The notes: generated by a model from the sequence alone, not told the origin. DNA of 64,000 nt from Guillardia theta CCMP2712 (GCF_000315625.1 NW_005434655.1:884259-948258); one strand, 5' to 3'; shown: positions 358 to 5,867, counted from the first letter of the stretch. Translations and numbers: made by a program.

Positions 358-822
358 TTACGACGAGGTTGATTCGTAGGTTCATTCATGCTCAAGTTCA
401 GGGTCGGGTATGGTGAAGCGAGATTCAAGGAGAAGGTAGAAGAAAGTGAGGAATGGATACAAGGAGGGAAGGGAACGAGGTTATTCGAGCATGTGGTGGG
501 TCCAGGGGAGAAAGAAATCAATACGGTGATGACGAAGATTGCATTCAGTTCGAATGCATGCGAGAAAGACGTGCAGAACTGAGGGGCGATGTTCCAAAAT
601 CTGAAACCACTCAACTATTATGGCAAAGATTGGTATGTGGTCAACACGTGAACCGAAGAGTTTTCATTAAATCATTTCATCTCATGTAACTACTGTACGA
701 TGGAAAACACTGTTCAATATACAACACAAATCTCAACAACCGAGGGCCAGTAGAGAAAACAGCAAACTGCCAATCACTCCTCGCTTTGGCCTCTCCTCGA
801 ACAAGTTCCAGGATCTTGCCCT

Positions 823-3800
823 TCACTCGCACCTGACGTTTCTGAACACAACATATCGTTTGTGCCCGACGACAGACTTGAGCATCATGACCTCTTTGAG
901 CACCAGCTGGATCTCGCAGACATGCCCCGACAGTCCCAGCCTCTTGGACTCGCTCGAGTGGATCCTCAAGTTCATCGCCACGTCACGGTACCCGGCCGAC
1001 CGGTCGGAGCGGTAGTGAAGGTCAAGTCTGTTCTTGATGCGGATGATCTCCAGCTCGGGGTCGCTCATGATGGCTCGGAGGCAGGAGCAGAGGTCCTCGA
1101 CAGCCTCGAAGACGACGCATTGCCTCGCTACGTCCACCAGCAGGGAGACCTCGCAGTTGTAGGACCGAGAGAGTTTCTCGATCGCTCGGTCCACTCCCTT
1201 CAACTTGGCGAACTTGATCTGCTGCACTAGGCCCTGCGCCTCTGCCTCCTCCATCCGGATGAAGGTCACCTTGTGCTCTTGCTCCTGCCCCGGCGAGTTG
1301 AGCACGAACAAGCCGTTGGAGGCTCGTGACAGCGCGATCGCCTTCTCTCGCAAGTGCTGCTCCAGCAGAGCAGCCTGCGCGTAAAGCTGATCCAGCGACC
1401 TTATCCTCCTCCCATCCAGGCCCTCCTCCTGCCCTCTCCTCCACCAGGGCACGTGCACGCTCCTCAGCATGGCAGTGAGCGGAGGGGCGGCGGTCTGCTG
1501 GGGCACGAAGAGATTCTCCCCGGGCCCGTCGATCCTCCGCACAGTCTGTACGATCTTGTCGGACTGCCTGATGGATGCGGCCAGCTGTGCGAGCTCGTCG
1601 AGGGCCTTGAGGGAGGACGGCTGGGATACCAGCTGGTCCCAGACCTCGTCGTACTGGCGCTTGTCACCCTCGACGTCTCGCCGTGACTGGTAGATGATCT
1701 TGGTGCGAAAGAAGAGGAAGACAACGGCGACACACATGACGATGCTCGGACCGGGGGGAAGTCGATGGCGGATCTCCTGATGATGAGGAAGTTGTTGACG
1801 AGCATGCCTGTCATGGTGGTGAAGAAGAGGACGGGAATGAATGGGGGAATCAAGCTCTCCTTGAAGATCAGTATAAGTCCCAGCAGAGTGAACATCACCG
1901 CATACACCCACACGTAGAAACTGTCCCAAGGCCTCTCAGACGAGAGTTGTCCCGTCGCTGCCGTAAACTCCAAGACGCTCACCATCAACCCGACGGTCAA
2001 CCCGTAGGTCATGCGCGCGGCGTGCACGTGACCGGCGACTGCGAGGAGGCAGGTGGCGAGGACGAAGTTGCCGTCGAAGAAGTGACCGTAGACGACGATC
2101 AAGATGCTGTACCAGGGCACCTGCAGGTCCACCTGATTCTCAGCTCCGCGGATCAAGTTGGTGTCGTACTTGTCGCCTTCGATGAAGGTGCAGGTGATCT
2201 CGAGGAAGACCCACCGGCAGACTGACCCTGACACGTACTTCCACGAACTCTCCTCCACCAGCCATGGCGCGTCGGTTGCCTGACGGTCGAGCACATGCAG
2301 CTCGAACTTGACGGGGTCAAGGTCTTGGCTGTCCGCCTGCAGCAGCGTGGAGAAGGTCCAGCCGTTGGCTGTGATGGGGCTGGGGATGCTGAGGTACAAG
2401 TGGCGACCGCGAGTGACTGTAGCGACGCCCGTCGTTGGCAGGTCGACTGGACAGCCGTCGAGCTTGAACCCGAGAGTGCCGACACGAGGGCCGATTGCGT
2501 CCGTGGCGAGGGAGCCGTTGCGGTACTCGATGGCGGTGAAGCGAGCATGGTAGGCCTGAAACTTGCTGTTGTGCATGGAGGCTTTGAAGCTCTCAAAGGT
2601 GCGGTAGTAGTAGTAGATGGCAAAGAGGAACAAGATTCCATGCACTATCGGCTTGCCGAGAGCGTGAGTGGTAGGACGAGAGGTGAACCACACGCTGACC
2701 GTCGCTGCTGTCTTGACCGCAAGTCGCTCCTCATTGAGACGATTGTCTAGGACGCTTCCGGGGTAGTAGCAGCGATGCATGAGCAGCTCCTGCTCTCGAG
2801 GGGGGATGACAGAGTTCACATCCTCGTTTGGTATGATAGTCACGACTGACAGAGCCCTCTGCCTCCTCCTTCCCCCCATGGACAACCAGCCCCTCTCGTT
2901 GAGGTCCTGGGTAAGGGAAGACACGTTGGGTGCCATGATCTGGAGGTACGAGCGTCGCCGCAGGGTTTGATGTACGCTGCTGTGAATCACAAACTGAACG
3001 TGCTCGAGGACGAGTCGGCAGACAAATCCTCTCACACAGCTCTGAACTGCGCTGTCAGTCTTGAAGCGGAAGTAAATTTTACAATCTCGGTATCCGGCAA
3101 GTTTTCTGGATCCGTCCTGCTTGTCAAAGTGATTGTGAATCTCGACGATGGAGATGTCTGTATCCCCAGCCATGATGCTGATACACTTCTTCAAGCTCGG
3201 CAGGTCAGAGAAAACAATCCTCTGAGTCACAAGGTCGCAAGCTTTCGAGACATCCCAATCATAACGAGTCGCTATGTCATCTACAACTTCATCCACATTC
3301 TTGATCTTCTCCCAGCGCACTTTGTTTCTGACACTCTCGTTGGCGAGAGCGTCTGCTGCATGAACAAACTCTCCTTCCGAAGTTGTGCAGAGCTGACCAT
3401 CACACTGAGCAGCGAGCTGCAGAGTCTTGTGGTTGAGGATGGGGTAGACTGCAACGGCCTGACAGTACAACTGATCGAGAGAATCGACGTACATGGAGAG
3501 GTTTGTGTTGTCTATCGAGATCAATTTCGGTGCATTCAGACCCTGACCCGGCCCTGCCCTGATAGGTGATAGCGAGCTGCTTGTAAGAACAAAGCTGTTG
3601 AGGTGTCTAAGACCGTAAGTCTGCTTGTCGCTGTTGTTGTCATTCCATCGACTGATCAGCATCTTCATCTCATTCAACTCCTCCTCCGCCTCCTTGCTAG
3701 ACGACATCTTGCTCCACAGAGCACTCAGCTGAACGAAATCCTCCTTCACACTCCGCCTGCAATCCTTCTTCACTTGCTCGATGTATACAATCATCCAACA

Positions 3801-5412
3801 AGAAGCTGCGGCTATGACAAGGCTTATGACCGGAACATCTCCCAGCACCAAGGAACATGTCGCTAGGATGATGCTGCAGATCAGAGCTGTCGGGAAGACC
3901 GTTGGTGGGCTGAATAACCCCCAAGCTGGGAAGAAGATCATCGTCTGGAGAGAGAAGTCAAAGCAAGGTAGAAGACAAAGCAAGGTAGAAGACAAAGCAA
4001 GGTAGAAGACAAAGCAAGGTAGAAGACAAAGCAAGGTAGAAGACAAAGCAAGGTAGAAGACAAAGCAAGGTAGAAGACAAAGCAAGGTAGAAGACAAAGC
4101 AAGGTACACGACAAAGCAAGGTAGAAGACAAAGCAAGGTAGAAGAGGAAAAGGCAAGAAGAAGGAGAGAGGATGAATGCAGGCGAAGATGGGAGGGCAAG
4201 GGGATCAAATAGGAAGAAGATGGGGAGAACGATGGATTGGAATGAAACAGCTGAGGGAAGAAGAAGACAAAGAGAGGAGAAGAAGAGAGGATTGATATGT
4301 TTGCATCACCGTCAGCGCCTCGATGAGAATGGTCCTTACGTCATACCCAGCAATGGATACCACATGGTTTTCTCGATACAGCGCGACAAACGCGACGATT
4401 TGCAGCACGCTGCGGACAAAGCTGCTGGTAGCCAAGATCTGAAGAATGACTCTAGTCAGTTGTCAGTATTCATGATAGCCGAGCACACCATTATCGGTAT
4501 TCCGTAGAAATCTAGCAGGGCAACCAGTGCAGCAACGATTGTCATGGAGCCTTCTATCAGCATTGCGATGAGGACTAGGTACTGACCGTAGGTACACGAG
4601 AGGGTCGAGAAGTCGAACTTCACATCCTCTAGCCTCTTGAGAGGAGTAGGAAAAGAAAAGTTCTTGTGCTTCACAACGTCTCGCTCATGTTTGCTGCCGC
4701 ACACCCACGGCAGACCCACCTCGTCCCACCGGTCCCCGTCCTTGGACGTCTCAAGCCTGAAGTCGATGGGATCTGCTTCTATGCTAAGGTTGTTGGTAAC
4801 GAAGTACCACCCGTCAAAAGTGATCTCTCGTTCAAACCTCAGTACGATGCTGTTCTGCGAGTACTCATAGCTCGCCCGGTCTGATTTCACTTTGCAATTG
4901 TTCTGCAGGGCGCCGAAGTCATGCACGAACGCCGTCGACGAGGTGATGCCCATGCTGCCATGTTTTCCTCGGAAGGTGTGAACATGGAGGCGAAAGAATC
5001 GCGAGCTCCGAACCTCATGGTTGCCAACCTGAGAGAAGGGCAGGAACGCGCTCCCATGGCTTGTCAATGCGAATAGCATGAGGACCCCAGAGCAGAGCAA
5101 GAGGATCTGAATCGACCTCAGAGTCACCAGAGCATGCAGCGGTCTTGCAGATGAGATTATCCTCTTGATGTCCTTGCGGTACACCGTTGTCTGACATGCC
5201 ATGAGATGCGTCTGAAGATAGTCTCCTGGCCTTTGCGCAGCATATCGCAAGAACTCATCTCGAATCTCTTCCGTGTACATGTCAAGGTTGTGTCTAACGC
5301 CCTCTTCACCATGTCCTCTCTCATCGTCTCCTTGCCTTGAAGTCTCTGCATGTCTATCACGGGCTAGGACGATGTCCGACGAGGCTTCGCATGTTTCATC
5401 GCCTACTCGCAT
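823..5412 (-). CDS. Multi-pass membrane protein with internally duplicated module: [TM - discoidin/F5-8C-like loop domain - TM bundle - RelA/SpoT-like nucleotidyltransferase domain] x2
   Basis: Exons 5412-4489, 4438-4310 and 3944-823 join through phase-0 GT-AG introns, with one homopolymer frameshift at ~1753-1758. The C-terminal domain has RelA/SpoT synthetase-type motifs KLKGVDRAIEKL, DVARQCVVF, GYRD, CEIQL and GHKRY. A degenerate copy (KIKNVDEVVDDI, DLVTQRIVF, GYRD, CRLVL) lies at ~3000-3320. Two homologous loop domains: FDGWYFVT..ADPIDFRLE and ANGWTFST..LDPVKFELH. Confidence 0.75.
3958..4146. repeat. 18-bp minisatellite (AAGACAAAGCAAGGTAGA, ~10 copies) inside an intron
   Basis: Near-perfect tandem units within intron 4309-3945 of the RelA/SpoT-like gene. 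Confidence 0.9.
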
Positions 5413-5867
5413 TCTTGTCGTTTCGACCCTCCCTACGGCTCTCCGATTGCGTTCCTGAGCAAACTGGGCGAAAACACGATTCAGTATTCAAATGTTACCA
5501 GTTATTTTCAATGTTTCATAGAAGATTTAATGGACAAGAGGTCGCAAGGCATCAGGTGGGGTTCGACAGAGATAAGTCACTTTACTGAGCATGACCCCTT
5601 GTTCATTACCAGTAGTGATTCTGTACCATATTTTTATACTCAATATTTTCAATTCTGAAATCTGTACCAATGGTACAATTTATAGAATATTTATAATGCT
5701 CCATGGTCGGATACCCCCCTCTTCCCCTCACTTTACTTTGCTCCTGCTCACCACCCCTCCTCAGGGAACCCCTGTCCTCTTCGACCACCCGCTCTTTCCC
5801 CCTTGATCACCCCACCCTACTGGGTTCCCGGCATCCCATCGTATCTTTGCTCGGATCGCATCGCGCC

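Follow-up and report, generated by a model that had tools for sequence, protein, structure and literature searches.

We analyzed a 64,000-nucleotide (nt) stretch of the genome of the cryptophyte Guillardia theta CCMP2712 (GCF_000315625.1, NW_005434655.1:884259-948258), referred to here as the window. Positions 823 to 5412, on the minus strand, hold a single gene of ∼1,348 codons that consists of an exon, a 544-nt intron, and a second exon. The gene encodes a receptor-like membrane protein made of two homologous units, each of which ends in a domain resembling the synthetase domains of RelA/SpoT homologs (RSH); we call the domain of unit 1 c1 and that of unit 2 c2. In the sequence, the gene appears as three minus-strand open reading frame (ORF) pieces, at 4456 to 5412 (318 amino acids), 1464 to 4208 (914 amino acids), and 823 to 1929 (368 amino acids), which contribute 308, 731, and 309 codons, respectively, to the total of 1,348. 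All searches and structure models described below were made on these separate pieces, with the exons unjoined and the frame change discussed below not read through.

Exon 1 (4489 to 5412, minus strand; 308 codons) begins with an ATG at 5410 to 5412 and encodes a cytosolic lead with the family's PG..L motif, the first transmembrane (TM) helix, the ectodomain of unit 1, and the next helix. The N-terminal offset of the gene is similar to that of annotated paralogs. Exon 2 starts in one frame (1752 to 3944; 731 codons), which encodes the last TM helices of unit 1, a linker, c1, and then the lead, first TM helix, ectodomain, and four further TM helices of unit 2. This frame is colinear with the paralog GUITHDRAFT_121390 over residues 5 to 730 (E = 4e-69). 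The remainder of exon 2 lies in a second frame (823 to 1752; 309 codons plus the stop at 823 to 825) and encodes the last TM helix of unit 2, a helical linker, and c2.

The predicted intron (3945 to 4488, minus strand; 544 nt) has GT..AG borders and a polypyrimidine tract, is in phase 0, and is compatible with the frames on both sides. It is supported by the long ORFs of the paralogs, which start at the same point as exon 2, ahead of an "FPxP" segment. No RNA reads spanning the intron were found in the ∼6% of RNA run X10 that was read. Inside it, at 3953 to 4145, is a 17-nt tandem repeat of 11.4 copies with 97% matches. The depth of the DNA runs over this repeat was 3 to 5 times that over its flanks, so the repeat unit is multicopy in the genome. 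When translated in the ORF frame, the repeat resembles TM helices (LLCLLPCFVFYLALSST repeats).

An arrangement of two adjacent one-unit genes, instead of one two-unit gene, might be suggested by the existence of one-unit relatives of 500 to 700 amino acids (e.g., GUITHDRAFT_122928), but we consider it highly improbable. The 914-codon ORF has no stop between c1 and unit 2, and c1 lacks the terminal RN.RCE-stop, continuing instead into the lead of unit 2. Both domains were in one open frame, 1,019 to 1,514 codons long and ending at RN.RCE, in all 20 of the two-domain paralogs that we fetched; furthermore, annotated two-unit proteins of 1,316 to 1,459 amino acids are colinear with the window gene. 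One gene with two units is the norm of this family, and the frame change is peculiar to the window locus.

That change occurs at a run of six C's (1753 to 1758, minus strand) directly ahead of the final TM helix of unit 2; the reference allele would for this reason lack c2. We examined four sequencing runs, including X2, X3, X10, and X11, over positions 500 to 5800. In the independent raw-read DNA run X11 (∼10× depth), 6 of 10 reads, with six different starts, carried an extra G behind position 1752. The additional base lengthens the homopolymer and merges both frames into one (..DFPPGPSIVMC..), and the in-frame reading reproduces the P-G-(G)-P-TM pattern of the family, which is seen in the paralog L031. 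Both frame forms thus exist as DNA, and alleles, a polymorphism within the culture, or a choice made during assembly are all possible. We also considered and rejected programmed −1 ribosomal frameshifting and slippage during transcription at the C run; either would produce the protein that the longer allele encodes and is unneeded given the reads, and no canonical slippery heptamer is present. With this one-base change in the reference as the exception, the window gene shares the traits of the family: two units, the RN.RCE end, and an intron ahead of FPxP.

The initial annotation of this stretch, made from the sequence by itself, had described two homologous halves, and this description held. 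The domains c1 (2892 to 3494, minus strand) and c2 (826 to 1410, minus strand) are homologous (BLASTP E = 1e-22; 26% identity). When compared pairwise, the membrane modules of the two units gave a weak match (E = 0.005); against a profile of the family's membrane modules from which the window rows had been excluded, unit 1 (residues 59 to 302 of exon 1) gave an E value of 9e-31 and unit 2 gave 2e-70. Within each unit, a cytosolic lead and a TM helix precede the beta-sandwich ectodomain; a TM bundle comes next, and a helical linker connects it to the RelA/SpoT-type synthetase-like domain.

The membrane module of unit 2 (1752 to 2801, minus strand; 350 amino acids) was modeled with AF2 (model mc1c7d8ec65b5; pLDDT 89.3, pTM 0.79). 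In this model, cytosolic helices are followed by the first TM helix (residues 51 to 77), a beta-sandwich (residues 81 to 225), and four TM helices (residues 230 to 343); with the extra hydrophobic helix encoded downstream of the frame change, unit 2 has 1 + 5 TM helices. By hydropathy alone, unit 1 appears to have ∼3 TM helices after its ectodomain, or ∼4 in all. The modeled sandwich corresponds to ectodomain 2 (2118 to 2570, minus strand), and ectodomain 1 (4558 to 5040, minus strand; ∼160 amino acids) is assigned the same structure by homology to it. Between the membrane and c2 is a juxtamembrane linker (1411 to 1707, minus strand) composed of two long helices, a disordered stretch, and short helices that lead into c2; in AF2 model m59423c4bafb3 the long helices occupy residues 2 to 28 and 30 to 48, and pLDDT is low at residues 53 to 72.

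The loops now seen as ectodomains had been called discoidin-like. That they are beta-sandwiches agrees with the model, whereas their membership in the discoidin (F5/8 type C) family, PF00754, is weakly supported. The Pfam E values were 0.2 and 0.13, far below the cutoff. A Foldseek search of the membrane module against the PDB returned nothing at an E value of ≤0.1, with lactadherin C2 at rank 48. VIA aligned ectodomain 2 to a galactanase beta-sandwich (6eon_A) with a Z score of 6.8, and the wide VIA search with the membrane module gave mostly unspecific helical bundles. Among the structural neighbors of ectodomain 2 in the Atlas, PF00754 occurred in 5 of 10 neighbor sets at low TM scores (0.26 to 0.36). 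Pfam and NCBIfam scans of the three ORF pieces identified no family, the only match being a chance-level F5_F8_type_C hit in ectodomain 1 (E = 0.2); these scans found no HD hydrolase domain, in agreement with the initial annotation. A Pfam scan of ten long family members likewise revealed no additional domains.

As judged from its predicted structure, c2 has the synthetase fold of the RSH enzymes, which is the fold first proposed for it. Modeled together by AF2, the linker and c2 had a pLDDT of 84 and a pTM of 0.81. When the c2 model was compared to the PDB with Foldseek, the top 50 matches were RSH synthetases alone (RelQ, RelP, CapRel, Tas1, FaRel, Rel, RelA, and SpoT). VIA-align gave the highest score with RelQ (5DED; Z = 13.1, root mean square deviation of 2.8 Å over 147 residues), followed by YwaC (Z = 12.3), RelP (Z = 12.1), CapRel (Z = 11.1), and Tas1 (Z = 10.9, 21% identity). 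In all, 26 RSH entries scored between 13.1 and 7.8, versus ≤6 for other transferases, namely, those of the Pol-beta type (TdT and Pol mu). A fold of the cGAS/OAS type, also considered, was rejected: no such entry was among the structural matches.

Comparisons at the sequence level pointed to the same group of enzymes. A profile of the family matched Tas1 in the PDB (E ∼2e-4) over the donor-ATP helix and the catalytic Asp, and it matched Bacillus subtilis YwaC (E = 7e-3) with the K, K, D, GYR, ExQ, and HxxY residues aligned on the YwaC motifs. A single-sequence phmmer search of the PDB with c2 gave chance matches only. Pfam RelA_SpoT was the top subthreshold family in 8 of 36 family members, with a best E value of 2.7e-4. 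A prediction of the complex between c1 and c2 scored 0.00; made without controls, this score speaks neither for nor against pairing of the two domains.

The two domains differ in the state of their motifs, as had been noted from the start. c2 has the full set: K71 (1198 to 1200), R75, K79, D93 (1132 to 1134), R96, GYRD (982 to 993), E166 (913 to 915) and Q168 (907 to 909) within CEIQL, and GHKRY; its C terminus, ..RNVRCE, is that of the rest of the family. The basic residues K71, R75, and K79, which would contact the donor ATP, align to those of Tas1 and YwaC. In the equivalent positions of FaRel2, R and K residues hold the ATP triphosphate, an Asp holds Mg, a Glu and a Gln read the adenine, and the Tyr of the G-loop holds the acceptor base (PMC11782079). 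c1, although it matches the domain profile well (E = 1.5e-57), is degenerate. It reads K..E...D, D..T, GYRD, and CRLVL and lacks HxxY. Five motif residues are changed (R to E, K to D, R to T, E to R, and Q to V), the last two changes replacing the E and Q of ExQ; the Mg-binding Asp is retained. GYRD, with the Tyr of the G-loop, is present in both domains and is invariant in the family. As a reading of the sequence of this gene, one putatively active domain and one pseudoenzyme domain, the arrangement originally suggested, is right. In this gene, c1 would be unable to bind the donor ATP and hence would act as a scaffold or a regulatory pseudoenzyme.

The window gene is one of many. A six-frame search of the G. 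theta CCMP2712 genome (87.1 Mb in 669 contigs) with c2 gave at least 86 domain matches. From our reading of the match table, these belong to ∼50 loci, ∼30 of which have two domains and ∼20 of which have a single domain or are fragmentary; the count of paralogs recommended at the outset was thereby carried out. Some paralogs are clustered. Three near-identical two-unit genes lie at C30:486000-531000, and GUITHDRAFT_121009 and GUITHDRAFT_121010 form a head-to-head pair at C206:44500-59000. Such local clusters point to recent tandem or inverted duplication.

Across the family, the contrast between c1 and c2 persists. The motif set of c2 was whole in all 21 genes compared, with one Q-to-R change. 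In c1, the Glu was kept in 20 of 20 paralogs, the Q was changed to R or V in 17 of them, and the C-terminal segment was always different from that of c2. The c1 of the window is the most degenerate when compared to those of the 20 paralogs. One could imagine that the RSH-fold domains are noncatalytic nucleotide-binding or scaffold modules and that the protein is a cytosolic nucleotide sensor that signals via another partner. The c1 domains, with R or V at the adenine-reading position and without the last motif, indicate that noncatalytic use of the fold does occur within the family. We nevertheless consider this explanation improbable, since in 21 of 21 genes c2 keeps the Mg-binding Asp, ExQ, the K and R residues for the triphosphate, and the Tyr of the G-loop, the pattern that selection for catalysis would be expected to leave.

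Over the central 97 residues, c1 and c2 were 85 to 100% identical in 15 of the 20 paralogs, while identity over the last 29 residues was 14 to 36%. The edge of this homogenization falls at the ExQ strand, where c1 has CELRL and c2 has CELQL (L031 to L047; e.g., L033:3301-3882 versus L033:5410-5991). The pattern resembles gene conversion within the gene whose extent is limited by selection, and the sharp edge at the ExQ strand suggests that selection keeps c1 and c2 functionally different. The window gene has escaped homogenization, its two domains being 28% identical in the central part. Among paralogs, the ectodomain was the most variable region (median identity, 21%) and c2 the most conserved (48%). 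Variable ectodomains joined to a conserved output domain are what one would expect of a family of receptors that share an output.

An exhaustive profile search beyond this genome gave 6,088 representative proteins at an E value of ≤1e-3 and 538 at ≤1e-30, many of them with two domain matches. A word-based search with region 89 to 819 of the 914-amino-acid piece had given nothing at ≤1e-3, its list being filled by 8,000 unrelated candidates, and carries no information on relatives. Among the best 150 of the 6,088, the named members that we looked up were all from cryptophytes (Guillardia, Hanusia, Rhodomonas, and Hemiselmis); the others were unnamed metagenome or assembly proteins. One 339-amino-acid partial member (P0178, in the cluster of P0137) is filed as "MAG: hypothetical protein, Promethearchaeia archaeon" (MGB1606902.1). 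It falls into a 90%-identity cluster with metagenome proteins of 1,139 to 1,202 amino acids that are of the same eukaryote-type family, and its archaeal filing is probably due to a misbinned eukaryotic contig. The initial annotation had raised the possibility of an uncharacterized system. In our literature searches, which covered RSH enzymes of Guillardia or cryptophytes and alarmone synthetases of membranes, the family was not described; on the other hand, thousands of relatives are in public data, and UniRef already names some paralogs "RelA/SpoT domain-containing protein." We regard the family as a new architectural variant within the RSH superfamily, some of whose members are known to automatic annotation.

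From these data, we think it somewhat probable that the window gene encodes a two-unit, receptor-like membrane protein in which c2 is an ATP-dependent pyrophosphokinase regulated via the ectodomains and c1 is a pseudoenzyme. The ectodomains would sense something outside the cell, and the TM bundle together with the two long juxtamembrane helices would pass on a conformational signal. In response, c2 would move pyrophosphate from ATP to the 3′-OH of an acceptor, most likely a purine nucleotide, which would yield a (p)ppGpp- or (p)ppApp-like product in the cytosol. Alarmone-producing enzymes have a large positive patch for the acceptor, whereas that of the tRNA-modifying FaRel2 is smaller (PMC11782079). 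The basic residues conserved near the G-loop in the family (KNR, GYRD, and GHKR) resemble the patch of the alarmone makers more than that of FaRel2, which weakly favors a nucleotide acceptor.

Several observations weigh against this interpretation. The gathering score of PF04607 was not reached, and the window pieces had no match to this family at an E value of ≤1. Genome scans with PF04607 and HD_4 identified only two loci, C47:131263-132737 and C24:131220-132315 (L051 to L055), at which HD_4 accompanies RelA_SpoT; these are presumably canonical plastid-type RSH genes. A free-standing HD_4 hydrolase (Mesh1/SAH-like) was not detected in the genome scan. With HD_4 confined to the two canonical genes, there is no obvious cytosolic hydrolase to end a (p)ppNpp signal. 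For every family member, catalysis, acceptor, and the role of the ectodomain are deduced from sequences and models. As for the window copy itself, the 2011 contig sets X2 and X3, like the reference, carry the frameshifted C6 form, and there was no G. theta gene model for the locus among the matches listed. Finally, in the portion of X10 that was read, ∼4 RNA reads fell on the stretch and none within most of the coding region. Most of these reads were past the 3′ end of the gene, at 500 to 676 with the first mate on the plus strand, and may come from a neighboring transcript.

The last three of these observations would also fit a window copy that is a decaying or silent recent pseudogene, with a genuine frameshift, an untranslated c2, and a c1 that is already dead. 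So would the state of c1, which is far more degenerate than that of any of the 20 paralogs, and the position of the gene outside the homogenization found in 15 of them. Against this, the 1,348 codons are open except for one homopolymer base, which 6 of 10 independent reads restore, and every motif of c2 is intact. In addition, an ortholog-like transcript of Hanusia phi (product P0001) is 66% identical to the C-terminal piece, and the scarcity of RNA refers to a small sample, 6% of one run. We judge a pseudogene to be unlikely; the window copy is a divergent family member whose functionality is doubtful. The initial annotation had asked whether raw reads would confirm the frameshift and whether the locus is transcribed. 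The reference does contain the frameshift, but the reads also include a form that keeps the frame, and RNA was nearly absent in the portion of X10 that was read. Overall, what was first observed at this locus is confirmed, and how it was interpreted is partly supported.

The main rival to an alarmone messenger as the output of the family is a defense effector like the toxic small alarmone synthetases (toxSAS). When triggered, the receptor's RSH-like domain would act as such a toxin and shut down the infected or stressed cell, either by depleting ATP via (p)ppApp, as Tas1 and FaRel do, or by pyrophosphorylating the CCA end of tRNA, as CapRel and FaRel2 do. toxSAS enzymes are documented bacterial immune effectors (PMC11782079, PMC11559606). 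The best sequence match in the PDB was Tas1, and the structural comparisons likewise placed CapRel and Tas1 near the top. Defense would also be in line with a large lineage-specific expansion in which the ectodomains evolve fast, and with a genome in which no dedicated cytosolic HD_4 hydrolase that could end a signal was detected. However, the nontoxic (p)ppGpp synthetases RelQ and RelP scored slightly higher structurally (Z of 12 to 13 versus 11), and the basic residues near the G-loop are kept, as in alarmone makers. No antitoxin-like partner is evident, and ∼50 constitutive membrane toxins would require tight autoinhibition. We therefore hold a defense output to be rather unlikely.

Returning to a messenger as the output, we offer a wider reading only tentatively: cryptophytes may have a large family of ligand-gated alarmone synthetases in the plasma membrane that would make a 3′-pyrophosphorylated purine messenger, (p)ppGpp or (p)ppApp, in the cytosol, outside the plastid, with c1 kept distinct from c2 by selection despite gene conversion. 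Such a family would form a new class of receptor enzymes in eukaryotes. RSH enzymes are known as soluble stress regulators of bacteria and plastids and as bacterial toxins. A nuclear-encoded form that is built into the membrane, joined to variable ectodomains, and present at ∼50 loci would imply that a eukaryote has adopted alarmone-type chemistry as the output of receptors, for signaling or for cell-autonomous defense. The maintenance of pseudoenzymes could be studied in this family as a natural experiment, given the conserved asymmetry of c1 and c2, and the polymorphic frameshift in the reference matters for annotation of the family.

The layout of the protein had originally been likened to the M1-C1-M2-C2 plan of adenylyl cyclases. 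A membrane module followed by a catalytic-type domain, repeated within one gene, and with one of the two domains degenerate, is indeed common to the window protein and the class III adenylyl cyclases (6TM-C1-6TM-C2), and the repeat is found in 20 of 20 paralogs. The likeness does not extend to the catalytic fold, which is unrelated, and Pfam scans of the window pieces gave no match to a cyclase-homology domain. The window protein also appears to have ∼4 TM helices in unit 1, and it has 6 in unit 2 and a large ectodomain in each unit. In adenylyl cyclases the active site is at the interface of C1 and C2, but in RSH enzymes it is within one domain; hence, the comparison is one of layout only.

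Within the RSH superfamily, the plastid enzymes of plants and algae (RSH1 to RSH4 and CRSH) and the products of the C47 and C24 loci share the synthetase domain with the window protein. The canonical G. theta loci encode soluble proteins with HD_4 and a RelA_SpoT domain detectable by Pfam; the window protein has no HD domain and no match at the level of Pfam, has TM helices, and shows no plastid leader. Among the toxic enzymes, i.e., Tas1 (6OX6), FaRel/FaRel2, and CapRel (7ZTB), it is Tas1 that the family profile matches best by sequence, and structural Z scores were 10.9 to 11.1. The family differs from these enzymes in its membrane location and in lacking a secretion or antitoxin context, and a (p)ppApp or tRNA substrate is hypothetical for it.

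The fold of c2 is shared with RelQ/SAS1 and RelP/SAS2/YwaC (5DED, 6EWZ, and 6FGK; Z of 12 to 13, root mean square deviation of 2.4 to 3.0 Å over ∼145 to 150 residues). Its synthetase motifs align with those of YwaC, and these enzymes likewise have no HD hydrolase domain. In contrast to them, the window domain is eukaryotic and nuclear encoded, is 12 to 20% identical to them and below the Pfam threshold, and occurs twice per chain in a membrane-tethered protein with ectodomains instead of once in a soluble single-domain protein. The C-terminal helix bundle that forms the RelQ/RelP tetramer is not evident in c2, which ends after one or two short helices. The same two-unit architecture, colinear over the full length, is found in GUITHDRAFT_121010, GUITHDRAFT_121009, and GUITHDRAFT_121390 (UniRef L1IAA7, L1I9C6, and L1I874), which are 26 to 52% identical to the window protein. 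Compared with these paralogs, the window gene has a more degenerate c1, no homogenization of c1 with c2, and a frameshift in the reference.

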